Of a DNA stretch of 64,000 bases, positions 2 to 46,975 are shown one piece after another. The notes under the pieces were generated by a model that worked only from the letters and a program-made list of their open reading frames with translations, did no database searches and was not told the DNA's origin. The translations under genes and the position numbers were made by a program. This DNA comes from Anthoceros angustus (Eukaryota; Plantae; Anthocerotophyta). The DNA lies in the NCBI GenBank assembly GCA_010909165.1, contig VJWM01000126.1:620001-684000 (forward strand), written 5' to 3'. Position 1 is the first letter of the stretch; the number at the start of each line of letters is the position of its first letter.

Positions 2-1703
2 GTGCACTGTGATGTGTTGCACAGTGGCATTCCTCCTGACTTGTTTGTTGGCACCTGCCTGGTGGACATGTATGCAAAATGTGGTGAACTGAAAGATGCA
101 CGCCAGGTTTTTGACAGCATGGCCACAAAGGATGTGGTGACATGGAATGCCCTGATTGCTGGGTATGCACAGCAAGGACTCGGCCAAGAGGCGCTTGTTG
201 TGTATGGACAAATGGAGGAGGAGGGCCTTATTTTGGCTGACCATGTTACTTGCCTTCTGAAGGCCTGTGCAAGCACTGGTGCCTTACAGAAGGGCAGGCA
301 GCTGCACTCACAGATTGTCGAAAGAGGACTGCTGGATGACGTAGTGTGGCAACTGCCTGGTGGACATGTATGCAAAATGTGGTGAACTGAAAGATGCACG
401 CCAGGTTTTTGACAGCATGTTGGCATGAAGGGTATGCAAAATGTGGTGAACTGGAAGATGCACGCCAGGTTTTTGACAGCATGGCCACAAAGGATGTGGT
501 GACATGGAACGCCCTGATATCTGGGTATGCACAGAAAGGACTCGGCCAGGAGGCGTTTGTTGTGTATGTACAAATGGAGGAGGAAGGCCTCATTTCGGCT
601 GACCGTGTTACTTTTGCTTGCCTTCTGAATGCCTGTGCAAGCAGTGGTGCCTTAGAGAAGGGCAGGCAGCTGCACTCAGATTGTCGAAAGAGGACTGCTG
701 GATAAGTGGTGGGCACCTGCCTGGTGGACATGTATGCAAAATGTGGTGAACTGGAAGATGCACGCCAGGTTTTTGACAGCTATGGCCAGAAATGATGTGG
801 TGACATGGAATGCCCTGATATTTGGGTATGATACTTGTGATGATAGTCACAGAGCACTAGCTTGTTTTAAGGAGATGTTAGTTGCCGGTATTCAGCCTAA
901 TGAGGTGACTTTTACTTGCCCTCTAGCAGCATGCAGTCATGAGGGACTGGTCCAGGAGGGTCTTCGATTCCATGGCTGAACATCATGGCATCAAACCTAG
1001 TGTTGAACATTACATTTGCATGATTGACCTGCTTTGGCGTGCAGGCCATCTAGATGAGGCAGAGGACATGCTCTTATCATGTGAGAACCAAAGTAATCTT
1101 GTGGGGTTGACCACTTTGCTGGCTGCCTGCAAAAGTCATGGTGATGTAGAGAGGGCTACGCGGTGCTTTGAAAGCCTTGTAAAACTGGACCCTCAGCGGG
1201 CGTCCACATATACGCTCATGGCCCAAGCGTATGCAGATGCAGGTATGTGGACGGATGTAGAGACGATTGAAGCACAGAGAATGGTTGCAGGAGCGAACAA
1301 GTAACCTGCAGTGGCAACCATCGAGGTGAAGGAGCAGGTTCATACATTTCTGGTGGGAGAAAGAAGAGAGGATATTGCGCCTACAGTAGAGATCACGAAT
1401 CCACGACTGAAGCAGGAAGGTGGCCACGTACCCCACACAAAGTTGGTGTTGAAGCCACTGGGTGAGAAGGAAAAGGAAGATGCGCTATGTGGGCAAGCTG
1501 AGAAGCTAGCTCTGGCGTTTGGTCTGTTGAACACTCCGAGTGGCACACCTCTGGTGGTGACGAAGAATCTACGCATATGCAGTGACTGCCACAGTTCCAC
1601 GGAGATCATGTCAAGGCTTGAACAGAGAGACATTGTTGTAAGGGATGGGTACCGTGTGCATCGATTTGCAAATGGTTGTTGCAGTTGTAAGGGTCGACCG
1701 TGA
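2..1703 (+). pseudogene. PLS-class PPR gene with DYW:KP domain ending GRP; disrupted; 5' end lies outside the window
   Basis: P/L/S motifs (VDMYAKCG, VVTWNALIAGY) are spread over several frames from 2 to 980, then E1/E2. In-frame TAA at 1302-1304 (NK*PAVATIEV), then HTFLVG...CGQAEKLALAFGLL...KNLRICSDCH...HRF.NG.CSCKGRP*. Confidence 0.85.
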
Positions 1704-1969
1704 CAGTAACCTCTTGAAGAACTGATGGCCAGTGCCTCAAGTGTGTCGCCAGAGAATATTGCTCTCCCTTGAGGCTGAATCGGGTTGATTAACCCCGTCC
1801 CTGTTCAAACTGGGACAGGGACACGTGAAGAAATTGAGCTGATTGCAAGTGGGAATGGGCCTTTATCAAATGTGTTCTGATTTAAGGGAGAAGGATGCAC
1901 CTGCCATGGTGTAAAAGAATTAGTAAAAATTATTTTATTTATATTTTCTTTTATCCTTTGGCGTCAACC

Positions 1970-2041
1970 GGGCATTTGGTCTAGTGGTATGATTCTCGCT
2001 TCGGGTGCGAGAGGTCGTGAGTTCGATTCTCGCAATGCCCC
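1970..2041 (+). tRNA. tRNA-Pro (anticodon CGG)
   Basis: Acceptor stem GGGCATT/AATGCCC, anticodon arm CTCGC-TTCGGGT-GCGAG, T arm GTGAG-TTCGATT-CTCGC; T-runs follow downstream. Confidence 0.95.
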
Positions 2042-2062
2042 TCCTACTCTTTCAATTCTTGC

Positions 2063-2316
2063 GATCCTTTTTACCATCTCTATCATGCACCCCTAGTGAT
2101 CCTTTTTACCATCTCTATCATGCATCTCTAGTGATCTTTTTTACCATCTCTTTCATGCAACTCTAATAATTCTTCTTACCATCTTTGTAATGCACACATA
2201 GTGATTTTTTTACCATATCAATATGATCTTTTTTACTATCTCTCTTATACACCTCTAGTGATTCTTTTTACCATCTCTATCATGCATTCCTACTTGATCC
2301 TTTTTACTATCTGCAT
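2063..2316. repeat. 35-bp tandem repeat, about 8 degenerate units, directly 3' of the tRNA
   Basis: Unit gatcctttttaccatctctatcatgcacccctagt starts at 2063, 2098, 2133, 2168 and 2203 and continues more degenerately. Confidence 0.9.
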
Positions 2317-3253
2317 GCGAGAGGTGGTGAGTTCACTCTCGCAATTTCTTTCTCGCAATGTTCTTAATTGGAAACAGAATAATCAGAAAAAAGAACATTT
2401 CCAATCCAAGGACTAATACAGACCTTTCCATTTCATATGTGTCAAACATCATGGAGGTACGATTGATTACATATACAAATTATAATTAATATGAAATAGA
2501 TATATATACAAATTATAATTATTATGGAATAGATATATACAAATTATTTGAGCTGATGCATAAGTCATGATGTGGCATGAAATTAACTTTATCCCTTCAA
2601 CTTGAAGATGTTGTATACATTATGATGTGCTGTAACATTGACATAGTCATGGCGAAAATCAAGCACACCACTCCAAGATGTTGTGAATATTATGTGAAAT
2701 TGAGTTAGTTGTGGTGAAAACCAAGTAGTACACAAACTTCGAGATGAGTGTTGTCATATTGCATCTAATTAGTTGTTCACTTTCAAAGCTCTTTCACTTC
2801 ACTTTCAAGGCAATTAGACAAATTTAACACAAACTCTGCAAGTGGTAGTCATGTTTTGTATTCCTTGTTGTTTATTTTGATAAGATTCTAAAAACTATAT
2901 ATTTTCTTTCAAGCTAACTTAAAATTATCTTTATAAATAAATAAATAAATAAACAAATCTATATTAATATTAAATAATAATATACATAATCATCTTCATT
3001 GATTCAATGAACGAATTGAAGTCCATCATATTTGAAACACGAGGTCCCGACGTACTTCTCTCCCGTGTCCTTGATGGTCTTCCTTGAACGCGCTGTATGG
3101 TTCGTGGGTTTAGTTGATCAATAAATGAAAGCTTGTTTTTGTATTACGGCGATTGTGGGAAATGGGTCTGACGCAAGTGAAATCCCAACTCTGCGACGAC
3201 AGAGCGGGTGCGCCTAGGCGGGCCCTTAGCTCGTCGAGGCTTTGGGAAGGAAC

Positions 3254-6200
3254 ATGTTCTGGAGCTGTGCACGCACGGGACTTGCTTTGACGGTGCATTT
3301 GATTTGCAGGGCGGGTGGCAGTCTAGGCCAGGTCGGTGGGGAAATTGAAGCATTGGAGAGTCTGGTACAGCGAGGATTTTATGTGTCCGTCGCACTCTTC
3401 TGTGGTGTTCTTAAGAGGTGTGTCGAGCAGAGGGATGAGGCTGTTGGCAGGCGTGTTCATGCTCTTACTCTTGAAACTGGGTTAGAGTCTTGTACATTCC
3501 TGGGCAACAACATTATACGGATGTATGCTTCTCTTGGGAGATTGCATGAGGCGTTCCAGGTGTTTACGGACCTGGCTGCACCGAATACGTTTTCCTGGGC
3601 AATCATCATTTTGGCACAGGCTAAGCTGGGAGAGCCTGCGCAGGTTATAAAGTTGTATCAGCAGATGCGACACTTGACTGTGAAGCCAACCAACTATGTT
3701 CTTGTGGCTGTCCTCAAAGCATGCACCAGCGAGGCAGATTTGGCATCTGGGAAGCAGGTCCATGCGGACATTTTGGAAACTGAGGTTGAGCCGAATGTGT
3801 TTGTCTGCAACTGCCTTGTGGACATGTATGCAAAATGTGGGAGCTTGAAGGATGCTCGCAGAGTGTTTGATGGAGTTGCCAGGAGAGATGTGGTTTCATG
3901 GAATGCCATGATCGCTGGATACACTCAGAGTGGGCGGGGGCAAGAGGCCCTCACCCTGTATGCAGATATGGTACAGGAGGGCATCATTTCAGCCAGCCAT
4001 GTGACATTTGGGTGCGTCATTAAAGCCTGTGCTAGCCTTGGTGAGCTACATCGAGGGAAGCAGCTGCACCTAGAGATTCAGACAAGGGGCATGGAATCTG
4101 ATGTTGGTGTTGGCAGTAGCCTGGTAGACATGTATGTGAAATGTGGCAGTTTGGAGGATGCACGGAGAGCTTTTGATAGTTTGCCGGTGAAAGATGTGGT
4201 GACATGGACAGCTATGATTGCAGGGTATGCACAGCATGGGCGTGGTCATGAGGCTCTGTCTCTTTATGGGAGAATGCAGCATGAGGGCGTCACTCCAGCT
4301 AATCATGTTACATTTGTGTGCCTCCTGAATGCATGTGCCAGCATCAAAGCGTTAGACGCAGGCAGGGAGCTCCACTCCAAGGTTCAGGCGAGAGGACTGG
4401 AAGCTGATGTGGTGGTCGGTAACAGTTTGGTGGACATGTATGCCAAATGCGGCAGCTTAGAGGATGCTAGGAGAGTATTTGACCATTTGCCCACAAAAGA
4501 TTTTGTGACATGGAATGCCATGGTTGCAGGGTACACTGAGCAAGGTCGTGGACAGGAAGCCCTGACTCTTTATGGAAGGATGAAACAACTGGGTATTCCT
4601 CTGATTGATCGAGTTACCTTTGTGTGTCTCCTGAAAGCATGCTCCAGTGTCGGGGCTGTACGTGAGGGGAAGGAACTTCATGACCAGATCCGGGAACAAG
4701 GACTGGAAACCGATGTGGTTGTTGCCAATTGCTTGGTGGATATGTATGTCAAATGTGGGAGCTTAGAAGATGCCCGCAGAGTGTTCGACATTTTGCCAAC
4801 AAGAAATGTCATAACATGGACATCAATGATTGCAGGATATGCCCAGCAGGGCCTTGGTCAGGAAGCCCTCAATGTATATGCACGCATGCAAGAGGAGAAC
4901 ATCACGCCAGCTAATCTAGTCACATTTGCCTGCCTGCTGAAAGCTTGTAGCAGCACAGGAGCTTTACGTCGGGGCAAGGAACTCCATCTTCAGATTCAAG
5001 AGAGAGGGCTAGAAGCTGATGTTGTCGTTGGTAACAGCCTGGTGGACATGTATGCAAAATGTGGTAGCATGGAGGATGCAAGCAGAGTGTTTGAAAGATT
5101 GCCAAGAAAAGATGCGGTGACTTGGACGGCCATGATTGCAGGATATGCAGAGGAAGGGCTTGGTCAAGATGCCCTTGCTCTTTATGCAAGGATGCAACAG
5201 GAGGGCATTAGACCAGCTGATCGTGCCATGTTCGTCTGCCTCTTGAAATCATGTGCCAGTGTAGGAGCTCTGCTCCAGGGGAAGGAGCTGCATCTGCAGA
5301 TTCGGTCAGCAGGACTGGAATCGGATGAAGTTGTTGGCATCAGCCTGTTGGACATGTATGCAAAATGTGGCAGCTTAGATGATGCTCGCAATGTCTTTGA
5401 CAGACTGCCCACTAGGAATGTCGTGGCCTGGACTGCGTTCATAAATGGGTTTGCACAACATAATCAGGGCCGGATGGGATTGCAGTGCTTTGAAGAAATG
5501 CTTCAGTATGGGGTGGAGCCTAATGAAGCTACATTCCTGTGTGTACTGGCGGCCTGCAGTCACGAAGGCCTGGTGCATGAGGGTCGACACTATTTCAAGC
5601 TGATGGTGGAGGCCCATGGAATTAATCCCAGTGTATGTCACCACAATTGCATGGTTGACCTTCTTGGACGGGCAGGCCATCTACATGAGGCTGAAACCAT
5701 GCTGCAGACTATGCCGTTCAAAGCCAACTGTGTAGGGTGGATGTCTTTGCTCAATGCATGCAAGAGCCATGGTGATGTAGAGCGTGGAAGACGTTGCTTT
5801 GACCTCCTTATCAGATTAGATCCTCAAAACGCAGCTCCCTATGTCTTCATGGCAAGTATGTATGCAAACGTCCACATGTGGTCAGATGTAAGCAGGATCG
5901 AAACCCTGAGAAGGTCAGCAGGTGCATGCAAGAAACCTGCAAGGGCCTGGATTGAGGTGAACAGCAAGGTTCACACGTTTGCTGTGGGGCAAGAAAGGGA
6001 TGACGTCTCGTCAAAGCTGAAGAGTGTTAATCTCCAATTGGAGGAGGAAGCAGGCCTGTACTCATCTCCGGAGGTGCTAGACGCTCTCTCTGGTCGGGGA
6101 AAGGGAGATGCTTTGTGTGGACATGCCGAGAAGCTTGCATTGGCATACGGGCTCTTGAACACCCCAGATGGTATGGCTTTGCTAGTCACCAAGAACCTTC

Positions 6201-6331
6201 GCATGTGCAATGACTGCCACAATGGCACCAAGGCCATGTCGAGAATTGAGAAGAGGGAAATCATTGTCAGAGACGCACACCGTGTTCACCGTTTCGTGGA
6301 TGGTTCTTGTTCTTGCGGAGATGGGCACTGA
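3254..6331 (+). CDS. Intact intronless PLS-class PPR protein (23 repeats, E1-E2) with DYW:KP domain ending DGH; candidate organellar RNA-editing factor
   Basis: First ATG at 3254. Regular L-S-P triplets, KKPARAWIEV (KPAxA), CGHAEKLA, KNLRMCNDCH, RVHRFVDGSCSCGDGH*. Confidence 0.93.
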   Translation: MFWSCARTGLALTVHLICRAGGSLGQVGGEIEALESLVQRGFYVSVALFCGVLKRCVEQRDEAVGRRVHALTLETGLESCTFLGNNIIRMYASLGRLHEAFQVFTDLAAPNTFSWAIIILAQAKLGEPAQVIKLYQQMRHLTVKPTNYVLVAVLKACTSEADLASGKQVHADILETEVEPNVFVCNCLVDMYAKCGSLKDARRVFDGVARRDVVSWNAMIAGYTQSGRGQEALTLYADMVQEGIISASHVTFGCVIKACASLGELHRGKQLHLEIQTRGMESDVGVGSSLVDMYVKCGSLEDARRAFDSLPVKDVVTWTAMIAGYAQHGRGHEALSLYGRMQHEGVTPANHVTFVCLLNACASIKALDAGRELHSKVQARGLEADVVVGNSLVDMYAKCGSLEDARRVFDHLPTKDFVTWNAMVAGYTEQGRGQEALTLYGRMKQLGIPLIDRVTFVCLLKACSSVGAVREGKELHDQIREQGLETDVVVANCLVDMYVKCGSLEDARRVFDILPTRNVITWTSMIAGYAQQGLGQEALNVYARMQEENITPANLVTFACLLKACSSTGALRRGKELHLQIQERGLEADVVVGNSLVDMYAKCGSMEDASRVFERLPRKDAVTWTAMIAGYAEEGLGQDALALYARMQQEGIRPADRAMFVCLLKSCASVGALLQGKELHLQIRSAGLESDEVVGISLLDMYAKCGSLDDARNVFDRLPTRNVVAWTAFINGFAQHNQGRMGLQCFEEMLQYGVEPNEATFLCVLAACSHEGLVHEGRHYFKLMVEAHGINPSVCHHNCMVDLLGRAGHLHEAETMLQTMPFKANCVGWMSLLNACKSHGDVERGRRCFDLLIRLDPQNAAPYVFMASMYANVHMWSDVSRIETLRRSAGACKKPARAWIEVNSKVHTFAVGQERDDVSSKLKSVNLQLEEEAGLYSSPEVLDALSGRGKGDALCGHAEKLALAYGLLNTPDGMALLVTKNLRMCNDCHNGTKAMSRIEKREIIVRDAHRVHRFVDGSCSCGDGH

Positions 6332-6665: not shown

Positions 6666-9921
<3,256 letters not shown>

Positions 9922-17856: not shown

Positions 17857-18340
17857 GGCGGTTTCTGGAAGTTTTAATGCCATGGTGGTCACAACGGTTT
17901 GGAGGAAGGCTTCTGCTTGATTGATGCGGAGGTCCGAAGTTGCGGAGTTACAAGCTGATAACTATCGTCGTCTGCCAGATGGCATACCCTGTACTTGTAT
18001 TCGGCATTATTTAGGGTCTACACCTGTTACCCCCTTAATCCGGGACCAGGGTGCGAGAACTCTCGAAGTGTAAATTTAATATGTACACCTATTCAATCTG
18101 TACCGGTTACAGTTCGCTCGATACAAACTGTGCCTACTCCCTGCTATGAATTTGAGCAGTTCACCGGGCGCACTTGTCGGAAGTGCGGCAGCCTGCGTAG
18201 GAAAAGCAACAAATGATTCTTCGTTCGTCAGTGTTTGAAGCGCAGCGGGCTGAAACCAATGCAAGGAACGGGAGATCGTGTGGCTCATCAGGCCAGATTC
18301 CGGGTTAACTCCATGGATTCTGCATGTGCTTGTGCGGATC

Positions 18341-21300
18341 ATGGCTGGCTGGCGGGTTGCACTTCATTCACACTTGGGGCGACATGGCCATGTGCAGCAG
18401 AAGCGTTTCTGGAGCGAACAAAGACGAATTGGCGGGATGAGAGGTTTTGCCGAAAGGGGCCTGACCTCCAAGTCCACATGGTGCTTGCCGGATGAGGATG
18501 ATCCTGACCCTCGCAGGCCTGCAGGATACGGAAGGAGCGTCACGACCGAAACCGTGAGCAGACTATGTGAACAGGGCCAGCTCAGTGAGGCTGTTGAATC
18601 TCTGCGTCTCCTGGTGCACACGAACTGTCGGATATCCCAGTCTCTCTTTTACACTGTTCTCAAACAATGTGTGGCTAAGAAGGACCTGGCTCTGGGGCGC
18701 CGTGTTCATGATCTGAGTGTGAAAAAGGGGTATGAGTCGGACACCTTCTTGTGCAACCATATCTTGCGGATGTATGCTTCTCATGGCAGGTTGCAGGAAG
18801 CCATGGATGTATTCAACATGGTTGCCAAACCGGATACCTTCACTTGGTCTTCCATAATTTCTGTGCATGCCAAGCATGGACAGGCTAGAGAGGCCATAAA
18901 ACTGTATCATGAGATGCGCAGGTCGAGTGTGAAGGCGGATGGGCATGTGTTTATCGGAGCTCTGCAGGCCTGTGCAAGGGCAGCAGACTTGGGGACTGGA
19001 CGGCAGGTGCATGCCGATTTGCTGGCCAGTGGAGTGGAGCCTGATTTGTTTGTTTGTAGTTGCTTGGTGGACATGTATGCAAAGTGTGGGAGCCTGAAGG
19101 ATGCCCAGGGCGTGTTTGACGAACTTGGTGAGAAAGATGTGGTGACATGGACTGCTCTGATTGCAGGCTATTCGCAGGAGGGTAAGGGTCAGGAAGCACT
19201 TCGCCTGTTCGACGCTATGCAAGAAGAAGGCATTGCTGCCCCCAATTCTGTGACATTTGTGTGCCTTCTGCAGGCATGCGCAAGTGTGGGTCCCTTGGCT
19301 TTGGAGAAAGGGAAGCAACTTCATGTGCAGATAGGAGAACGGGGCCTTCAAGATGATGTGTTTGTGGCCAATAGCTTGGTAAACATGTACGCAAAGTGTG
19401 GGAGCTTACAGGATGCTCAGGGCGTGTTTGACAGACTTGCCCAGAAAGATGTGGTGACATGGAATGTCATGATAGCTGGATATTCTCAGCAGGGCATGGG
19501 CCCAGAAGCTCTTCGCCTTTACAGAACGATGCGAAAGGAGGGTAACACTGCTCCCGATTCTGTGACCTTCTTGAGCCTCCTGCAGGCATGTGCAAGTATT
19601 GGTGCTCCTGTTTTGGAGAAGGGTAAGCAGCTTCATGCTGAGATTCGAGGAGGAGGGCTTCATGTTGATATATTTGTAGCTAGCAGTTTGGTTCACATGT
19701 ATGCAAAGTGTGGCAGCTTAGAGGATGCTCAGGGAGTATTCGATGGACTTGATCACAAGACTGTGGTGACGTGGAATGCCATGATAGCAGGATATTCCCA
19801 GCAGGGTATGGGTCAGAAAGCCTTGGATCTTTACAGTGCTATGCAACAAGAAGGCACTGCTTTGCCCGATTCTGTGACATTTCTGTGCCTTCTGCAGGCA
19901 TGTGCAAGTGTGGGAACCTCTGGTTTGGAGCAGGGGAAGCAGCTTCATGCCCAGATTGGAGAGCAAGGTCTTCTGGCTGATGTGTTTGTGTCTAGCAGTT
20001 TGGTCAACATGTATGCAAAGTGTGGTAGTCTAGAGGACGCTCGTGCTGCGTTTGACAGGCTTGTTTGGAAAGATGTGGTGACGTGGAATGCTATGATAGG
20101 AGGATATTCGCAGCAAGGCATGGGTCAGGAAGCCCTGGATCTTTATGGTGCCATGCAGGAAGAAGGTGTTGCTGTACCTGATTCTGTGACATTTGCATGC
20201 CTCTTGCAGGCATGTGCAAGTGTAGGCGCCTCAGCTTTGGATAAGGGGAAGCAGCTTCATGCTGAAATTGAAGTCCAAGGTCTTGAAGGTGATGTGTTTG
20301 TAGCAAACAGCTTGGTGAACATGTACGCTAAGTGTGGCAGCCTGCTGGAAGCGAAGAGGGTGTTTGACAGACTTGCTCAAAAAGATGTTGTGACGTGGAA
20401 TGCCTTGATAGCGGGATATTCGCAGCAGGGCATGGGGCAGGAAGCCCTTAATCTTTATAATGATATGCAAGAAGACGGCACTCCAGCACCCGATGCAGTG
20501 ACATTTTTGTGCCTCCTGCAAAGTTGTGCAAATGTGGCAGCGTTGCACTGGGGTAAGCAGCTACATGCTGACATTGAAAAACAAGGGCTTCAAGCTGACC
20601 TTTTTGTCGCAATCGGTTTGATAAACATGTACGCAAAGTCTGGGAGCATGGTTGATGCACAAAAAGTGTTTGACGCTTTGTTGGAAAGGGACGTTGTTGC
20701 CTGGAATGCACTGATTGCAGGATACTCCCGTCAAGGAGACAGTCAAGTGGTGCTTGACTTGTTTCGCAGAATGAAAGAGGATGGCACACAGCCGAACGGC
20801 ATTACCTTCCTCAGCGTTCTGACAGTGTGCAGTCATGCGGGGCTGGTGGACATTGGGCAAGAGTACTTCGAAGCTATGAGGAGAGACCATGTCATTACTC
20901 CCACCACTGAGCACTACACATGCATGGTGGATCTTCTGGGTCGGGCAGGCCAACTCGATGAGGCACTCGCAATGGTAAAGACAATGCCTGAGCTGCCTGA
21001 TGCTGCAGTTTGGCATGCTCTGTTGGGTGCTTGTTGTAAGTGGAGCAACGTAGAGGTGGGACGCCATGCGTTTGATGAAGCGGTGAAGCTGGATGAAACA
21101 AATGCTGCAGTGTATGTATCTATGTCAAACATTTACAGCGGTGCCCAGATGGGGGAGGAGGCAGATCAGATGCATGCAAGGAGAAAGGGAATTGGGGCAT
21201 GGAAGCAGCCAGGCCAGAGCTGGTGGACGGACATGGACGGACTCGTGCACACTTTTCTGGTTGGGGATATACAGCATCCCGAGAGTGATGGTATATATGC

Positions 21301-21385
21301 AAGATTGAGATACCTTGTTCCCAAAATGAAGAAAGAAGGGTATGTGCCATGTCTGGATTCCTCGCAGGGCTTCATACTTCGATGA
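18341..21385 (+). CDS. Intronless PLS-class PPR protein (23 repeats) with E1-E2 and a WW-type PG box; DYW truncated (E+ type)
   Basis: Likely ATG at 18341 (MAGWRVALH). L-S-P triplets, then WKQPGQSWWTDMDGLVHTFLVGD..HP...GYVP, then a stop before any HxE motif. Confidence 0.9.
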   Translation: MAGWRVALHSHLGRHGHVQQKRFWSEQRRIGGMRGFAERGLTSKSTWCLPDEDDPDPRRPAGYGRSVTTETVSRLCEQGQLSEAVESLRLLVHTNCRISQSLFYTVLKQCVAKKDLALGRRVHDLSVKKGYESDTFLCNHILRMYASHGRLQEAMDVFNMVAKPDTFTWSSIISVHAKHGQAREAIKLYHEMRRSSVKADGHVFIGALQACARAADLGTGRQVHADLLASGVEPDLFVCSCLVDMYAKCGSLKDAQGVFDELGEKDVVTWTALIAGYSQEGKGQEALRLFDAMQEEGIAAPNSVTFVCLLQACASVGPLALEKGKQLHVQIGERGLQDDVFVANSLVNMYAKCGSLQDAQGVFDRLAQKDVVTWNVMIAGYSQQGMGPEALRLYRTMRKEGNTAPDSVTFLSLLQACASIGAPVLEKGKQLHAEIRGGGLHVDIFVASSLVHMYAKCGSLEDAQGVFDGLDHKTVVTWNAMIAGYSQQGMGQKALDLYSAMQQEGTALPDSVTFLCLLQACASVGTSGLEQGKQLHAQIGEQGLLADVFVSSSLVNMYAKCGSLEDARAAFDRLVWKDVVTWNAMIGGYSQQGMGQEALDLYGAMQEEGVAVPDSVTFACLLQACASVGASALDKGKQLHAEIEVQGLEGDVFVANSLVNMYAKCGSLLEAKRVFDRLAQKDVVTWNALIAGYSQQGMGQEALNLYNDMQEDGTPAPDAVTFLCLLQSCANVAALHWGKQLHADIEKQGLQADLFVAIGLINMYAKSGSMVDAQKVFDALLERDVVAWNALIAGYSRQGDSQVVLDLFRRMKEDGTQPNGITFLSVLTVCSHAGLVDIGQEYFEAMRRDHVITPTTEHYTCMVDLLGRAGQLDEALAMVKTMPELPDAAVWHALLGACCKWSNVEVGRHAFDEAVKLDETNAAVYVSMSNIYSGAQMGEEADQMHARRKGIGAWKQPGQSWWTDMDGLVHTFLVGDIQHPESDGIYARLRYLVPKMKKEGYVPCLDSSQGFILR

Positions 21386-31858: not shown

Positions 31859-34800
31859 TCACCCAAGTCCAACGAAGCCAAAAAGACCACCTCCACCCAG
31901 CTCCGCTTGACGAAGCTCCCTTTTCCTCTGCTCCTCGAGCGGATCGGGGCTCCTCATCAGCCTTCGCACTCGTCTGTGGTCACAAAATGCAAACCATGAG
32001 CACCAGCGGGCCACCCCAGGACATCACTCGATCTGCAAAAAAGGAATCGGGCAACGTAGAGATACCTGTCATGCTCACACAGCGCGGGAAAGGTGGGCAT
32101 AAACTCTTTAGCCTTGGGCATGGGGACCTGCTGGAACCAATCGTGCTTCAAAGCTTCCTCGGCTGTTATGCGCTGAAAAGAGCCACACATGAAAAGACCT
32201 GGTCAAAAGCCTGCAAGCATGGAACAGGATCATCGCCAGCAAGCACAGAGTAGGATCACAGACCAACAGAGAATATGTGCTACCTTTTGAGGATCGTAAG
32301 TCAAAAGCTTGTTCAAAAGATCAAAACCACTTTCAGACAAAGCTGGCCTTCCAGCAAACGCTGTTGCAGGAAATTTTTCCCTCAACCTGTTGTACCTGGA
32401 GACAATGACAGAAGGAGAGCACAAATCAGGTCAATTGTCCAGCTACATCACAGCCTAGCAGTCTGTTGCCACCGTTGGTTACTTACGGTTGCTTAACAAA
32501 GTTGCATTTAATGCCTGGCAACTTTGGATAGTCTGGCCAAATAGTTTCTGTTGGTGTGCCAAGGACTTTGAAAATCTGATGCAAGCAAATGACATAAGGG
32601 GTTAAGAAGACCAGTCGACCCAACCTACAACAACAGTGTGAGTAAAAAGACACTCAAACAAACAAAGCGCACCACTTGTGGGCCTACCAATGATCATAAA
32701 TACAGTAAATGGAAACTAGATCCTACACCCAATATCAGTAGAGCATGTCCATAAAACCTGGGTTCAAACATCGAGGTCACCAAAAAATCATTGGTCAAAC
32801 ATACCACGATCCAATCAGCACAACATGCTGTACACTCAAGCACACAATGTAAATACACAAAGCACAGGGCAAGGAGCCACACCTTATCCAGTTGCTCTAT
32901 CTCAGTCGTGCCACTGAAAAGCGGTGCCTTCGCGAGAAACTCAGCCATGATGCATCCTAACGACCACATGTCTATTGCCGTTGAGTACAGCTTAGTTCCC
33001 AGCAGCAATTCAGGCGCCCTGAAAACAGACACCAGACTAAACATGTGATAATCTGACTTGGGCTTCCCACAGTTGGTGGGATCAAGCTACATACTAGACC
33101 ATCACACAGTCAGAAAACTGCTCCAAACAAAAATCCACTAACCCATATTGACCATCAACAGGGCATGAACTGCCATACCTGTACCAAAGGGTGACCACCT
33201 TGTGCGTGTAGGCCTTCAAGGGGCTGCCATACTGCCGAGCCAAACCAAAATCACAAATCTTCAGTTCACCACGGTTGTTCAGAAGGAGGTTCGACGTTTT
33301 CAAATCCCTGACACAGAGACAAGCTCAAGATCAGCAAACGCAAACACAAACACAAACCCAAAGCACCACTTTGCGCCAAAGATACTTACAATGAGCTGCA
33401 ACATAGAACTATACCTGTGGAGGACCCAATTGTCATGAAGGTACTTAACACCTTCAAACAGTTGAAGCATCAGGCATTTGACTTCACTTTGGCTGAAAGG
33501 CTGCTTCATACTTTCCATAAGACCCTTCAAATCATGTTCCATATACTCCATGACCATGAAGATAGAATCTAGATTGCTCCCTACGACAACTTCTTTCACA
33601 TCCACCACTGAGGGATGGTGGAAAGACAGCAGCACATTGATCTCCCGCAGAGAAGTCATGGGAAAACCTTCTTGCTCCTGTTGCATCTTCACCTTCTTCA
33701 AAGCAACAATCTCACCAGTCCTCTTGTCCCTTGCACGATATACCACCCCATAGGTGCCCTCATCAATCCTGTTTAATCTGGTTTCACAATCAGAGTGGAA
33801 GTCAGGGCATGCCATGGTACATATAGCATAGAGCGGCTGTCAGAACCTAATGTCAAAGAAAACTGAAGACCACGCTCATGACTAACGTAACATCGTACCT
33901 TTCAAATTCATCAACACTGCGACAACCTTGCAACATATCAATGGTACGTTGCATTAAGCCATTTATTGGCTGCACAGGTTCATCCTCTGACTCTGATTCC
34001 AGTTCAGGCCGTTGTTCTTCCACATCTTCAGTGTCCCCTTCTTCATCAAGCTCCATAAGCTCTCGCTTATTTAGCTCTCGTTCATCCTCTTCCTCATGTT
34101 CTCCACCACCCCCGCTGCCGAGGACCTCACTGCCATCACTTTCACTTCCTTTCCCCTTCACTCCACGACCATCATCACCCTTATCTCGAATGTACTCACC
34201 TGGCTCAGGGGATGCACTCAGGCCAAGATTTGCCTGACGCCTTTCCGGAGACAGGTGCTCATCGTCACTATTATCGGACAAATGTCGACCCAACACGTTT
34301 TGCCCACGGTTTTGCATCATCCTTGACTTCGATCCCAGGAGTGGCGACTTCACATGCTCAGGACTATGAGTCTCCTCTGCCCATCTCGATGCTGCTATTG
34401 TTATGGGAGGTGCAACCTCATCGTCCTCCACTTGCAAGTGCAGCAGCTGGCCAGGCTCAGGCTCATCATCCGACGACATCGGTGACTCAGCCACATTCTC
34501 ACGGTCAGCCATCACAGTATCTCCAACTTCCTGCTCGTCATTGCTGGTTGATACCTCAACCCTACTCTGCTGATGAGCTGGCGGTGAGACCGGGGACACA
34601 GACCTTTCCCTATCCCTTCCTGAAGACACCTTTGAGACAGGGGTGGCCGAAGACACCACAGGCGGTGTTTTGCGGCCAACACTTGGGGCGACAGGAGACC
34701 TACGCTGTACAGACGAGGAAGGGGAAGGCCGCTTTGACAGGGAAGGAGAAGGCCGTTTAGACAAGGGGGGAGTAGACCTGCCAGACGAGGGCGGAGTACC

Positions 34801-35859
34801 ACGACCAGACACAGGAGTGGACCCCCGACCAGCTAAAGGGGAAGTTCGCCTGCCAGCTTGAGAAGCCAGAGAGACGGACTGCGGAGGCACAAGACTGGCA
34901 CCAGCAACAGAACCTGGAGTAGTTGAAACTTGTGACGGTGAAGGAGCCATGCTCTTCGCAGGTAAGCGTTGTGAGGATGCCCGCTGCGAAGAGGCCTCCT
35001 GAGAAGCACCAAACCTCAATACGCTTGTAGATGATGCACCTGAGGGTTTCGAACGAGCACCAGACTTTTCATCAAGATCCCACACAATGGGAGAGAACTT
35101 ACGCTTCTTTGCTGGCGCCGGATCTCCTCCTCCAGATCCTCCTTCCCCTCCACCTTCCTTTCCCTGCATCTGCCGGCCCGGATCGGCCGCTACCGAGCTC
35201 CCTTCTTCTCCTCGACTGGCCTGGTCCCGAGACTCCACAGAATCCATCTGATTCTTGTCTCCGTCCTCGTTTCTGCTTCCACTAGAGAGCTCCCCGGGCT
35301 CCCTTTCCGTGTCCTTGCTCCCCGGCTTGCCGGCCGAGGCAGGAGCCCCCGCACCCGGGTGCTCCCTCTCAGAAGGCGTGTCACTCCCTGACGAGGCTCC
35401 GACAGCAGCCATAGCCTGAGCCGCCGTGCCAAGCACCAAACCCCGCTCCTTCACCGGACTCTGCCTTCTATCCGCTTCCACCTCCGGAAGCCATCTCATT
35501 GCCCTAGCCCCTTGTTCCCTGTCCCTGTCCCTCCCCCTATCCCTCCCTCGTTCCCTCTCCCTGTCTCGAGCTCCCTTGTCCGGATCCCGATCCTTGGAAC
35601 GGTCCCGCTCTTTCGAGTGCTCCTTTTCTTTCTCCTTCCTGCCCGAGTAGCCATCTCCGCTGCCGCGAACATGCGACAATGCCCTGTCCCGTTCCGAGCC
35701 CAAGGCATTCCGGTCCCGGGTGCTCTCCCGATCCCTCTCCCTGTCTCTCTCCCGCTCCCGTTCCCTCTCACGCTCACGCTCTCGGTCCCGATCACGATCC
35801 CGCAGCCCCCGACTGCGTGTGCTCGGCAAAGAGGAATTGTGGTGCCGTCCCGCTGCCAT
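31859..35859 (-). CDS. CDKG: Cyclin-dependent kinase G (CDK11-like) with a long RD/RS- and Ser/Pro-rich N-terminus
   Basis: [10 protein letters not shown]|[30 protein letters not shown]|[19 protein letters not shown], end [13 protein letters not shown]. Confidence 0.95.
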
Positions 35860-36210
35860 GGCATTCAACCTAGTCACATCTCCGACACACCATGCAATTT
35901 CATCTACCCGACCTTCCTTACACGGAAGAGAGGAACATCAACACCGCCAGGGCTGCTCCTCGCACACCGCCTCAACGCAAATTACGTGAAATGAAATATT
36001 AGGGGGCTTCAAAGTTGGGTTCGGCAATAAAACGGAATTGCCGTTTAGGGTGCGAAATAGGTTCGGTGTCTCCATTCGGGACGCGCTAGACGGGACCGGT
36101 TTCGTGTGCCTCGTTTTGGTGCGAACCGGGAATGCCGATTTGTTAAATGCCGGTCTCAAAAGTCCTTGACGCCCGCCAGCCCGACTTGTTCCTCGTTTCC
36201 TATCCGTTTT

Positions 36211-36769: not shown

Positions 36770-39700
36770 TTTAAGTCCACTAATATTTAAGTCCACTAAG
36801 GACGGATTTCCGTCATGGAATTGATCTGACAGACATAGAGAGAGACTTTCATGAAAATTACCTGCTATTCTAGGTCTGGCCTGGAGACTAGTGCTGTGAA
36901 GCATAATCAAATATCCGGCAAGTTGAGAAGTTGAATTTGGTTGGTCCTCATTTCCCACATTTGTTTCAAGCAAACTCCTGCAATAATAGGGTCAGGAAAA
37001 TTGACAAAACCCATGAGTGAAGATCGAGTTGTTGTAAATAGATTCATAAATGTATGCCTGATATCTTTATATATGGGACAGAGGAAAACAAAGTGTTCCT
37101 CAGTCTCAACATCCTTGTTGCATAACTTGCATATTCGGGTCTCCTTAGGTGGCTTTGGACGCAGCCATCTATCAGTCTCAACTCTAAGATGGTGGAACCC
37201 CACCCAAAGATGACCCACAATCATCCTAAGCTTGAAGGACACATGGGTGCGAAGATAGAGAGGAAGCATTAGTTTCCCAGAGTTGCAGAGGATACGAAAA
37301 AGTTGTTTGTAAGTTTGGAGCTTAGTGGGTAAGAAAGAGATAGAGGACCAGGTATAAGACAAATAGGTAGTTTGCAATTCAAAACAGATGGACTTATTCG
37401 GAGGAGGGGGAAGAAACTAAAAGAGGGGGTGGGCAAGCTCGGGACAGAATCCAAACTTCTCGAGCCAGGAAGAAGACTGGGCATACCAACAAGTCTTCTT
37501 TCCTAAGGAGGCTAACTTTCGAGATTACTAGAATGCAAGAAGGAGGTATGAGGGAGTGGAGGTGGGGTGATTAAACTGAGCTTCTTCTAAAGAGTAAAGG
37601 CGGTATAGGAAGTTGGTTAGGCTAAATAGACCCTCAAGTTCAAGCGGGAAAGTGGCAAACTCTGCAAGAAAGATGGCAAGGGGGACAAACTTCTTACATG
37701 CAATGTGGGGCCGAAGAAAAGATGTCTGAACCTCCTCCACCCTGCACCAGTTGTCGAGGGAGAGATAGTGTCCCCAGCACTCGGCCGCATACACAGTCGA
37801 GGGAATAACAACTGTGTTGAAGAGCCATTGCTAAGTGGGGATGTCCTTGATGTGCATCCCAGAGCACTGTCTCCGAACTCCACATGCAGATGCCACACCC
37901 TTGACAATGCGAGCAGAGGTAGAGAGCTTCCACTGGAGTGTCGGGCCATAGAGAGTGCCACCTACGTAGACATAAGATTGGACAACCTCCACAGGCTCAC
38001 CCTTGTAGAAGAACTTCAGATTGTGCTGAACTGGATCCCGCCGGTTGAAAAACATGACCTTGGTCTTCTTCAAGTTCACTTCTAAATCTCTTGCCGCGTA
38101 GAAGCGGGACAATGTGTCTAGTTGCTGTTGGAAGCCCTCAGGAGAATGGGACAAAAGGGCAATGTCATCTGCAGACAAGAGAATAGCTATACGCACGAAG
38201 AAGAGGAGGCAACCAGGATTCCCAGACTCCACAATCCAAGACTCCAGCTCATCAATGTACAGGCCAAATAAATTAGGAGAAGACGGATCTCCCTGCCGCA
38301 CCCCCATATTGCGAAGCAAATCCAGAAGGTCAAAAGCACCATAGGGTGTGCGGATCCTAGCCTTCACCTTTTCATAGAGGATCCTAGTGGCATGCAAAAG
38401 ATGAGCAGGCATCCCCAACCTATGGAGGCGGGCAAAGAGCTTCTCCTTGGAGATAGAGTCGAAAGCCCGCTTGAAGTCAACAAAACAAATATACACATGT
38501 CTGTCATCCTTCCGTCTGCTTTTTGCCTCCTGAATAATAGCAATGAGGGTGAAGAGATTGTCTTGGGTGTTCCGTTTCGGACGAAACCCAGCATGGCCCC
38601 TTGCTCTAATGTCAGCATTCTCAGCCCAAGAAATACTGAGAATTTCCAAGCAAGAATTAAAGTCTTCATTTCTTGGCACATCTTCTATGACAAGCCTGAT
38701 GCCATAGTCGAATGTCATAAGTCCTCTAGAATCCGCTTTTCTCTCAACCATCGTCTTGCTTCCCAATACTCCTCTCTTTTGAAAAAGTCCTTGGCTGGCA
38801 TTCCTCCTAGCCTTCCCTTCTCCCAACAAGCCACTTCTCTCACCTCTACCATGCTGTCTTCCGTACATGAAATCTTTCCCCACCGCGTGAGGCTCCTACG
38901 AAGTTGCCCTTGCCTCGGTCTTGAGATAGAGTCGAAAGCCCGCTTGAAGTCAACAAAACAAATATACACATACATCATCCTTCCGTCGCTTTTGCCTCCT
39001 GAATAATAGCAATGAGGGTGAAGAGATTGTCTTGGGTGTTCCGTTTCGGACGAAACCCAGCATGGCCCCTTGCTCTAATGTCAGCATTCTCAGCCCAAGA
39101 AATACTGAGAATTTCCAAGCAAGAATTAAAGTCTTCATTTCTTGGCACATCTTCTATGACAAGCGATGCCACATAGTCGAATGTCATAAGTCCTCTAGAA
39201 TCCGCTTTTCTCTCAACCATCGTCTTGCTTCCCAATACTCCTCTCTTTTGAAAAAGTCCTTGGCTGGCATTCCTCCTAGCCTTCCCTTCTCCCAACAAGC
39301 CACTTCTCTCACCTCTACCATGCTGTCTTCCGTACATGAAATCTTTCCCCACCGCGTGAGGCTCCTACGAAGTTGCCCTTGCCTCGGTGCGCAGATACCA
39401 AAGCGGAGGATCCATTTCATAAGTTTATCAACTATGTTCAACTTCTCTTCTTCTGGGAATCTATTCCCCCCCTCCCCATTAGGTCATAGGATCCCGAGAT
39501 CAAACTGTTCACTCCTGACCTCATCTTAACAGCGATCAACAACCTCGGATCTGGGAGAGCCTTCGACCCTGCAGATATCCCCGCCGAACTTTTCTCCTAT
39601 GGAGCTCCTTCTATTATTGCCCTTCCTTAACTGCATTATTCATCGAGGCCTTAGTCCATGGATTTTCTGACGCATGGTGTTGGAATGACATCCATTCCAT

Positions 39701-42719: not shown

Positions 42720-45700
42720 ACACGTCAGAGCTGAAAGAAAAAGATCGGTTTAACGGCTCACACTACGCTGTCTGGCATATCCGGATGAAGTCCATCTTGT
42801 TAGCTCGACGTGTCTGGAAAATAGTGGATGGGACTACCCCCCAGCCCGACCCCAATGCAACTCCAGCACCATCTGCAGATCAGATCGCTGAGTGGGATGA
42901 ATTGAACAGCATTGCAATTGCTCTACTAATAGCAGGATTGCATACTGACCTCATTTCCCAGGTCGAGTTTCTCGACAAAGCTTCTGAAATCTGGACACAA
43001 CTGGAGAAGACATACAAGGCTACAAATGTACTGACCCTTGTTGGTGTTAAGTACGAGTTTTATGCCTTGAGGATGAAAGAGGGGGATAAGGTAGCGGCTT
43101 TCACAAGTAAATTCCGTCACCTTAGAGCCCAAATGGCTTCTCTATCTGGTACGAAGATGGAGGAAGTAGATGCTGTGGCTGAACTCCTCGCGAGACTCCC
43201 TTCATCGTACCAATCCTTTGTTACTAGCCAGAATGGACCCTTGAGAGCTGCGAATGTTGCTGCTGCTGGAAGTGCTGCAAACATCACATTAGAGGATGTC
43301 ATAGGCGCTTTGTATCGGGAGGAGCAAAGCGGATGTTTTCTTCAAACACTTCTAAAAGTAGAACGGAGAAGGCATTATTCACAGCTCCCAAATCATTCAA
43401 AGGCAAAGGAAAAGTTGGAGGTAAACCTGGCCAAGCTTCTGATTCCGCTGGTCCAACTAAACGTCCAGGCAACTGCAATTGGTGTGGTATAGCTGGACAT
43501 TGGGCCAGGGAATGCAAGAAAAAGAAGGCAGGGGAACCTAAACGTGCTCCTAAAAGCTCAACTAGTTACGCATTGCGATTAAGGAGAAGACATCCGTGAC
43601 ACCAAACCTGGTGAAGATCCTAACAATGTGCCTTGCTCGTTCCATATGTGATGAAGATGGCTGGTACTTGGATTACGGTGCCACATCTCACATCTGCAGA
43701 AGCAAAGATCAGTTTTATGTGCTGCAATCTAACAGAATGGCTGAAAGAGTACTGTTGGGAGATGAGCGACATCATTCCGATCTCAAATCCATGGCGATGG
43801 CATGTGTAAATTTACTTTGCACGATGGATCCATTCTTACCTGGAAAATGTACTCTATGTGCCATCCATGGCGAAGAACTTGGTCTCTCTCAAGAACCGAT
43901 GACCGAGCATATGACATGACAGCTAGTGAGGATACTTGTCTCTTCTACAAGAGGTCAGAGCCTTCAATGCTGGCATTTAAAGGTACATTAGATCACGATC
44001 TGTATAGACTTGATTTATGCACCCTCCGACACCAGGCTAGCCTTGTCTCTGAGAAGTCCCAACGTCTTGCTGTCCTGTGGCACGCACGGCTTGGTCACGT
44101 TAATAAGAGAAAACTAGTTGACATGTCACTGCAAGAGTGCCATCTTGAGCCTCTTCCACAGATTTTCAAGGACTTACCTTCTTGTGAAGCCTGCATTGTT
44201 GCTAAACAGAAGGCCCATCCCTTTCCAGTTTCAGCAACCTACAGAGCATCAGTTGTCCTTGAGTTAGTTCATGCAGACATCTCAGGTAAGATACATGTCC
44301 CATCTCTGGGTGGTTCTATCTATTACCTCTGCATCACTGACGACTATTCTCGATATACTTGGACGTTCCCGATGCACTTTAAGAGTGATACATTCGAGCT
44401 CTTCCGTGATTGGCTATTGACTGCTGAAAAACAGACTGGTTCTTTTGTCAAGTACCTTCGGACTGACAATGGAACAAAATTCGTCAATGAGGCTTTTGAC
44501 ACATTCCTGCAAGAGAGGGGGATCCAACGTCAACTTACAATCCCCTACACTCCGCAACAGAATGGCGTAGCTGAAAGGAAAAATCAAACCTTGCTGGCCA
44601 TGACACGGAGTATGTTATTGTGGGCTAACTTACCTCAAGAGTATTGGGTTGAAGCCATTGTTGCTGCCATCTATATTCTCAATCGACTTTTTACAAGTTC
44701 AGTCCCCTCTCAGACTCCATATGAGGCTTTCTGGAAACGCAAACCCAGTTTGCTACATCTACGCATGTTTGGTTCACGTGCTTTTGCTCTCATCCCAGAG
44801 GAGAAGCGTAAGAAGCTGGATCCGAGAGCCCAAGCACTTGTTTTTGTCGGGTATAGTGAGCAGTCCAAAGCTTACAAACTTTATGACCCTGCAAATCAGC
44901 GCGTTGTGTTAGCACGTTCTGTCACATTTCTTGAGATTGACAGGCCCCTCATAATCGGCCACCCAATAGCAGAGGGAGAAAATGGCATACCTCAGCTACC
45001 AGACGACGCTGTTCATTTTCCTGATAATGACACTCATGACGAGGGAGATGATACAACTGTCCAACCTGCTGATATTGCACCTCCCCCTGCTCAAGATGAA
45101 GAGCGATCCTCCTCATACCCCTCCACTGCAAAGATCACCGGCAAATGTTGCGTTAATCGACCACGATCCATATGAGTATGAGGATGTACCTTTCCCTAAT
45201 CCAGATGCTGATCTAGCAGCTGGAGATGATGATTATCAAATGGTCATGGAACATGTACCTGAGGACGATGAACAGCCTTTTCCTGTTCAAGATGAAGAGC
45301 CAGATCCTCCTCTACGACGTTCTACCAGAAATCGTCCTCCACCAGAGCAATGGAAAGAGCCACGTTATGAATCAATCGACTTTAGAACAACATATGCCGA
45401 CATCTGCAATTCTGCTTCTAGCACTATACACCTGGAGCCCAAGTCTTTAACAGAAGCATATTCAGGTCCTGAACGAGATAAGTGGAAGTTTGCAGTAGAC
45501 GATGAATACAATTCTCTCGTCAAGAATAACACGTGGAAGTTAGTAGACCTCCCACCTGGCAGAAAACCTACCTCCTGCAAGTGGGTTTTCAAGTTAAAGT
45601 TGAATGCTAAGGGAGAGATTGCCAGATATAAAGCACGACTGGTTGCACGGGGATTCACGCAAGTGGAAGGGCTAGACTATCAGGAAACATTCTCTCCTGT

Positions 45701-46975
45701 TGTTAGGGCACAGTCAATTAGGATGATAATCGCCCTAGCAGCCGAGTTTGACCTGGACTTGCAGCAAATGGACGTATGCACTTTCTTGTATGGTGCGTTA
45801 GATGAAGACCTTTACATGGTAGGAAAAGGGTATGAAGACTCTAAGTATCCAAAGAAAGTTAAGCTCAAGACCATTTATGGTCCAAAAGAGCGAGTCCGTA
45901 TTTCACTATACATGAGCACTTGATTAACAACTCATTTGTTCAAAGCTCAACTGATGGTACTGTTTACAAGCTAACGAAGGGAACTGCCTACGTCATTCTA
46001 GCACTGTATGTTGATGACGTGATTTTGGCCACTAATAGCCAACCCTTGTTAGCTGAGGTCAAAGAAATGCTAAGCAACAAGTTTGAAATGAAGGATATCG
46101 GTGAGCTACGTTTCTGCCTTGGCATTCAGTTACTAAGGGTCAGACCTGAGAAGTTGATCATCATTCATCAGTATCAATATATTCAAGAACTGCTACATAA
46201 GTTTAAGCTTGAACATGCCCGGCCATCTACTACACCATATGCTGTAGGGACTAAGCTCACTAGTCTGCAATGTCCACAAGGTGCAGACGAGGTGAGGGAG
46301 ATGGCACAGGTCCCTTACAGGCATGCCATAGGAAGCTTAATTTTTATAGCTAACTGGACAAGGCCGGACATCCAGTATTCAGTCAGCACCCTATCCCAAT
46401 TTCTGGAAAATCCAGGTCGAGTTCATTGGCAGGCAGCCAAACGTGTCTTCCGTTACCTAAAGGGTACTCAGTCCTATGGACTAGCATACAGAAGCACTGG
46501 ACAGCAGAAACTTACGCTGAAAGGCTTCACAGATGCTGATTGGGCATCGGACACAGAATCACGTCGAAGCCTTTCTACATATTGTTTTCTCCTCTCCTCA
46601 GCTGTCACCAACTGGAGCTGCAAGAAACAAACATCGGTTGCCCTCTCGTCAACTGAGGCCGAGTACAAGAGTCTGACAAAGGCCTCTAAGGAGGCAGAGT
46701 GGATACGAACCTTTTTGACAGATTTGGGGCAACAGCAAACAGAGCCAACCCCACTTCTATGTGACAACATGTCCACTCTTGCGCTTGTTGCAAATCCTAA
46801 ATTTCATGCACGCACGAAACACATTGAAATTCAACATCACTATATTAGAGATGTGGTTCATCGTGGTATTATAAAGGTCTGCCATGTTCCAACAGATGAA
46901 AATACGGCAGACATCCTTACAAAGGGCCTTCCCAAGCATCTACACTACCGATATGGAAGGCCTAGGGCTTATTGA
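42720..46975 (+). pseudogene. copia gag-pol, frameshifted in this sequence
   Basis: RFNGSHYAVWHIRMKSIL (gag), CNWCGIAGHWAREC (zinc knuckle), WYLDYGATSH (PR), WHARLGH/VHADISG/LRTDNG/QQNGVAER (INT), KARLVARGFTQ/YVDD (RT), FTDADWA/KHIEIQHHYIRD (RNase H). Confidence 0.92.

Follow-up and report, generated by a model that had tools for sequence, protein, structure and literature searches.

Two neighboring DYW:KP genes in plant nuclear DNA: a GRP-type pseudogene and an intact DRH-like candidate for U-to-C editing

Two PPR genes lie close together, both on the plus strand, at the start of the stretch of DNA analyzed here (the window, 64 kb of plant nuclear DNA), and an initial annotation had proposed them as candidate factors for U-to-C RNA editing. 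U-to-C conversion is the least understood of the pyrimidine editing reactions, and editors that can be programmed for it are in demand as tools. The question raised by this locus is whether either of the two genes is still able to work and, if so, what it might do. Using the protein of the second gene as a tblastn query, we found PPR loci at only three places in the 64-kb window (2-1688, 3242-6328, and 18551-21337). The first two are the genes in question, referred to here as gene 1 and gene 2, which are separated by a spacer of 1550 nt.

Gene 1 is a GRP-type pseudogene

Gene 1 (2..1703, plus strand) is a GRP-type PPR-DYW:KP pseudogene of which only the 3' part falls inside the window, since it runs off the window's start. 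Searched against Pfam as separate open pieces, it matches PPR, the E motif, and DYW_deaminase (2.4e-33). The pieces are collinear with residues 399-950 of a GRP-type protein (P0005), yet they are spread over three reading frames. Three-frame translation and tblastn, together with a comparison of the DNA with its own internal repeat copies, placed six frame-breaking indels within 620 nt (345..965, plus strand). These are an extra T (+1 nt) near 347; a 65-nt duplication, consisting of a 52-nt direct repeat and a 13-nt spacer, by which 368-419 appears again at 433-484; losses of 2 nt near 670 and of 1 nt near 703, with an in-frame TAA between them; a second extra T (+1 nt) near 781; and a deletion near 962 whose length is not a multiple of three. 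None of the single-base changes is located inside a homopolymer.

The damage extends into the DYW:KP domain (1302..1700, plus strand), which comprises 133 codons with the stop counted and is of the GRP type, ending in KGRP as initially described. Relatives carry KKPAxA at the KP box, and the initial annotation had read KPAxA in both genes. In gene 1 the box is interrupted, since the codon for the lysine of KP is now TAA (1302..1304, plus strand) and the sequence reads N-K-stop-P-A-V-A. Given that the proline is kept while the lysine codon has become this TAA, the ancestral box was KP. The AEK motif ascribed to both genes is indeed present in each, but in gene 1 the full motif has to be corrected to QAE, with Gln (1494..1496, plus strand) replacing the zinc-binding His of HxE that is found in 18/18 clade relatives. 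Gene 1 keeps the Ala of the HxE motif, CSDCH, and the Lys at domain position 88 (the K of TKNLR).

GRP and DRH endings mark two subgroups of hornwort DYW:KP proteins (Gerke et al. 2020, as cited in PMC9478123), and gene 1 resembles the hornwort GRP-type proteins on which the designer proteins KP2 and KP3 are based in its GRP end, its 133-codon domain, and its HAE-type spacing. It also has Glu (STEIM) where PG and DRH types carry Lys after CxxCH, a trait of GRP proteins (PMC9478123), so that, as in the GRP type, Glu takes the place of the Lys which in other types is paired with the terminal Asp. It differs from GRP-type proteins in the stop at the KP lysine, in having QAE rather than HAE, and in the six upstream indels. 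With the stop in the KP box set aside, 49/52 clade-conserved columns are still intact in its DYW domain, and the decay is therefore fairly recent.

The good preservation of these 49/52 columns would also be expected of a working gene whose breaks were errors of assembly or sequencing. Against that reading stand the six frame changes in 620 nt, which are without homopolymer context and of which one is a 65-nt duplication, as well as the TAA stop and the replacement of the zinc-site His by Gln. Moreover, the same contig carries two PPR ORFs of 3.1 kb (3242-6331 and 18278-21385) that run without a break. Since the lesions avoid homopolymers and include the duplication, and the neighboring long ORFs are clean, we consider errors of this kind extremely improbable as the source of the breaks. 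Gene 1 is thus a dead GRP-type paralogue.

Gene 2 is unbroken and encodes a DRH-like DYW:KP domain

Gene 2 (3254..6331, plus strand) is a single ORF for a PLS-class PPR-E1-E2-DYW:KP protein of 1025 aa, counted from the first ATG. The ORF is unbroken over 3242-6331, with the first ATG at 3254 and the stop codon at 6329-6331, and with gene 1 carrying six indels and a stop, the initial description of one decaying and one intact gene holds. Pfam models match PPR (5e-110), the E motif (5e-12), and DYW_deaminase (9e-30). The PPR tract (3494..5728, plus strand), delimited by tandem period and motif parse, shows a tandem period of 306 nt at 3795-5403. The order of motifs is S, six P-L-S triplets (36 + 35 + 31 aa, about 102), P2-L2-S2, E1, and E2; the PPR units are 35/36, 35, and 31 aa long, with N, T, or S at position 5 and D, N, or S as the last residue. 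E1 and E2 occupy 5729..5932 (plus strand), as located by Pfam E_motif (residues 843-905) and the motif parse. A search of 1704-3253 for an upstream exon of gene 2 or an OSB-type PDF motif turned up nothing beyond short ORFs, a tRNA-Pro gene, and AT-rich repeats, and a search for a poly(A) remnant past the gene found none. An exact-sequence look-up of the gene 2 protein in a collection of 15 billion sequences returned no identical entry.

The DYW:KP domain of gene 2 (132 aa; 5933..6328, plus strand) begins with a KPARA box, where the proposed KPAxA is therefore borne out, and ends in DGH (6320-6328). It reads VHTFAVGQERDD and is without the xHP segment after VHTFAVG. As a yardstick, DYW:KP domains, which are without xHP, measure 132/133 aa versus 136 aa for the PG type, and the His of their zinc site is followed by Ala (or Cys). 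The zinc site consists of HAEK (HAE) and CNDCH, with His64/Glu66 at 6122-6130 and Cys92/Cys95 at 6206-6217, and Lys87 (the K of TKNLR, 6191-6193) corresponds to Lys88 in the numbering of 133-aa domains. The terminal CSC is retained, and the protein ends in GDGH, in agreement with the ending first reported. The C-terminal 182 residues (E2 plus DYW) match the solved structures 9kfx (a synthetic PPR-DYW protein; 2.4e-46), 7o4e (OTP86; 4e-30), and 7w86 (DYW1; 1.7e-27). Relative to 9kfx and 7o4e, gene 2 shows a 4-residue gap exactly at the SHPQ of PG-type domains. On the strength of these sequence matches to solved DYW domains, we regard the fold of this domain as settled.

In its overall PLS-E1-E2-DYW layout, gene 2 is like the DYW:PG C-to-U factors (OTP86/At3g63370, PDB 7o4e; PpPPR56), with which it also shares the HxE...CxxCH zinc motif, the terminal CxC, and the active-site lysine. 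Unlike them, it has a KP box in the place of PG, the 4-residue xHP deletion, and HAE where they have HSE, and it is without the DYW tripeptide. Its identity to DYW:PG factors is 41-44%, and the two fall into separate clades (100/100). The likeness to the hornwort DRH type (the basis of KP1) is closer: gene 2 has a 132-aa domain, KPARA, HAE, and CNDCH, it keeps the third-last Asp together with its partner Lys, and its closest database proteins, at 65-72% identity, end in GDRH. It departs from the DRH type in its DGH end, in a position outside the core DRH+GRP group (97/90), and in the substitutions P45Y and E60G.

These two substitutions emerged when we compared gene 2 with the columns conserved in 17 or more of the 18 members of the clade. 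It has the conserved residue in 50/52 of them, including all zinc ligands, Glu66, and the Lys88 equivalent, and the two that it misses are Pro45, changed to Tyr (P45Y), and Glu60, changed to Gly (E60G), both just before HAE. The segment that holds P45Y and E60G gates the active site in PG-type domains. The DGH end had been singled out in the initial annotation as a departure from DRH, but the last residues of relatives vary widely, with DRH, DAH, DHH, DNH, VDH, DRY, DRP, and DSP all found among close ones. Given that the middle residue is free to vary in this way, DGH is a minor variant, and P45Y and E60G are the more notable departures of gene 2. The stretch 6056-6121 of gene 2 (DYW residues about 42-63), which includes both of these changes, is unusually diverged, reading LYSSPEVLDALSGRGKGD versus GHVPHTELVLK..SE.EKED in relatives.

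The initial annotation had noted that both gene 1 and gene 2 are without the D..HP segment after HTF.VG that a third, WW-type gene retains, and this is confirmed. The WW gene (18341-21385, plus strand; ATG at 18341, ORF 18278-21385) carries a PGQSWW box, and its xHP segment is retained as GDIQHPESD after VHTFLVG. The ORF comes to an end inside the DYW domain, about 55 residues from where the domain begins, and past 21385 the deaminase core (HxE/CxxC) is absent in any frame. Because the ORF stops early and the core is missing downstream, we take the product to be an E+-like truncated protein, a class reported to be enriched in hornworts (PMC13386178).

Kinship of the two genes and their surroundings

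To place the two domains among known sequences, we ran a word-index search with the last 200 residues of gene 2. The best matches are 56-67% identical, and the top ones end in GDRH or GGRP. Run assemblies are the source of the best 19 matches and of most among the next 16, and the best match among named organisms is from the lycophyte Diphasiastrum (56%). We then inferred a maximum-likelihood tree from 65 DYW domains of the KP and PG types, for which the domain of gene 1 was taken from the residue after its stop; a search of the 120 matches for WW-type references found none. P0006 and P0015, KP proteins with a KPG box, were counted as KP, and the split between KP and PG types is then clean, with a support of 100/100. 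Both window domains are on the KP side, supporting the assignment of both genes to the DYW:KP type. Gene 1 nests inside the GRP clade (100/98), and its labeling as GRP-type therefore stands. Gene 2, which had been called DRH-like, is found within the DRH+GRP clade (100/97), where it is basal and lies outside the core (97/90). Its terminal branch (0.30) is about as long as that of the pseudogene gene 1 (0.29).

The common orientation of the two genes and their distance of 1.55 kb could be taken to mean that they arose by a recent local tandem duplication, after which one copy died, and the initial annotation had accordingly regarded the pair as showing the turnover of editing factors. The domains themselves argue against this: those of gene 1 and gene 2 are 54% identical to each other, whereas each shares 66-72% with proteins from other samples, and they belong to different subclades. 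In addition, a tRNA-Pro gene and unrelated repeats occupy the spacer. A recent duplication at this locus is thus very unlikely, and on the basis of the 54% identity and the separate subclades we reject it. The lower mutual than outside identity indicates instead that the two genes are old paralogues that are neighbors by chance, and what the locus presents is a pseudogene beside an old paralogue, not a turnover event legible from the locus itself.

The spacer contains a nuclear tRNA-Pro(CGG) gene (1970-2041, plus strand). Behind it come a 35-nt unit repeated in tandem about 7 times (2063-2312) and then a short second copy of the 3' part of tRNA-Pro (about 2316-2345). The tRNA gene, the 35-nt repeats, and the partial tRNA copy could together be a tRNA-derived repeat element. 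On the other side of the pair, a gene for a CDC48/p97-type AAA ATPase, split by introns (6869-9491, minus strand), begins about 540 nt past the stop codon of gene 2 and points toward it. The window also carries an XS-domain gene, an aconitase gene, and copia-type retroelement ORFs. Remains of retroelements are located at 37831-38883 (minus strand) and 43802-46975 (plus strand); they comprise one ORF with an RVT_1 reverse transcriptase and a copia-type integrase/RVT_2 set spread over three overlapping ORFs. Pfam has no match for a further ORF of 674 aa (33853-35877, minus strand), which lies in GC-rich DNA (about 58%).

Candidate U-to-C editing by gene 2

What gene 2 might do can be judged against the published work on U-to-C editing by designer proteins. 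U-to-C editing has been achieved with the synthetic proteins KP2, KP3, and KP6, both in human cells and in E. coli (PMC9478123). In E. coli they are the 3/7 designer KP proteins that are active, KP2 and KP3 being GRP based and KP6 fern based, and the DRH-based KP1, the type nearest to gene 2, is outside these three (PMC9478123). The mutations HAA or AxxA abolish the activity of the designer proteins, showing that HAE and CxxC are needed (PMC9478123). A mechanism by way of a lysine-uridine Schiff base has been proposed (PMC11332814), and the crosslink at Lys88 has been both proposed and tested (PMC11332814, PMC11845758). Lys88 is essential for U-to-C editing, and its replacement switches the enzyme to C-to-U (PMC11845758). 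The chemistry of the reaction had been called unresolved in the initial annotation, a statement that is now partly outdated by the activity of KP2, KP3, and KP6 and by the tests of the Lys88 mechanism (PMC9478123, PMC11332814, PMC11845758). The assay in E. coli and human cells that the initial annotation called for has already been run with designer proteins, and the KP proteins assayed so far are all synthetic (PMC11845758). Given that the active designers are GRP or fern based only, the intact, DRH-like gene 2 comes closest to a subtype without demonstrated activity, and the GRP subtype, for which activity has been demonstrated, is present here only as the dead gene 1.

Judging from its sequence, gene 2 is probably a functional nuclear gene of a hornwort-type plant and likely encodes a site-specific U-to-C editor of an organelle that acts via a Schiff base, next to the dead GRP-type paralogue. 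Its about 24 PPR motifs would read RNA, one base per motif. With the published PPR code applied to position 5 and the last residue, the P and S motifs are predicted to spell, from N to C, approximately Y ? n U C n G A n U U n Y A n U G n ? A n Y. S2, E1, and E2 would hand the DYW:KP domain the base located four nucleotides 3' of the tract, and this zinc-dependent, deaminase-like domain (HAE, CxxCH, and the Lys88 equivalent) would most likely convert a specific U to C, the U-to-C step proceeding through a lysine-uridine Schiff-base intermediate. In this scheme, we infer the targeting to an organelle, the RNA target, and the presence and direction of editing.

A different reading is that gene 2 is intact but is not a U-to-C editor, its product being silent, an RNA binder or helper only, or an editor of the C-to-U type. 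KP domains turn to C-to-U editing after small changes (PMC11845758), the DRH-based KP1 is not among the three active designers, and gene 2 has P45Y and E60G before its active site as well as a long branch, all of which fit such a protein. On the other hand, all catalytic residues are kept in gene 2, together with the Lys88 equivalent and 50/52 conserved columns, and a lesion-free 3.1-kb ORF beside a riddled pseudogene argues for selection. We therefore regard a role other than U-to-C editing as the less likely one, though it deserves some weight. There is also a slight chance that the DRH lineage has in gene 2 a naturally occurring, active member, with DGH and P45Y/E60G as possible marks of a different behavior; this could be, for example, the release of product without a lasting crosslink or a mixture of U-to-C and C-to-U editing.

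Site-specific U-to-C editing thus remains our preferred reading for gene 2, as a candidate of a familiar kind. Hornwort genomes hold hundreds of such genes; the two described here are ordinary annotation, and nothing at the locus singles gene 2 out. The family, its two hornwort subtypes, the link to U-to-C editing, and the expansions of PPR genes in hornworts were all known already (PMC9478123, PMC13386178). Within this framework, the dead gene 1 adds a further example of a decayed PPR gene, and the intact, natural, DRH-like gene 2 is a reasonable candidate, as the activity shown so far is that of consensus-designed KP domains only. If gene 2 is an active variant of the DRH lineage, U-to-C base editors could usefully be modeled on it as a natural template.
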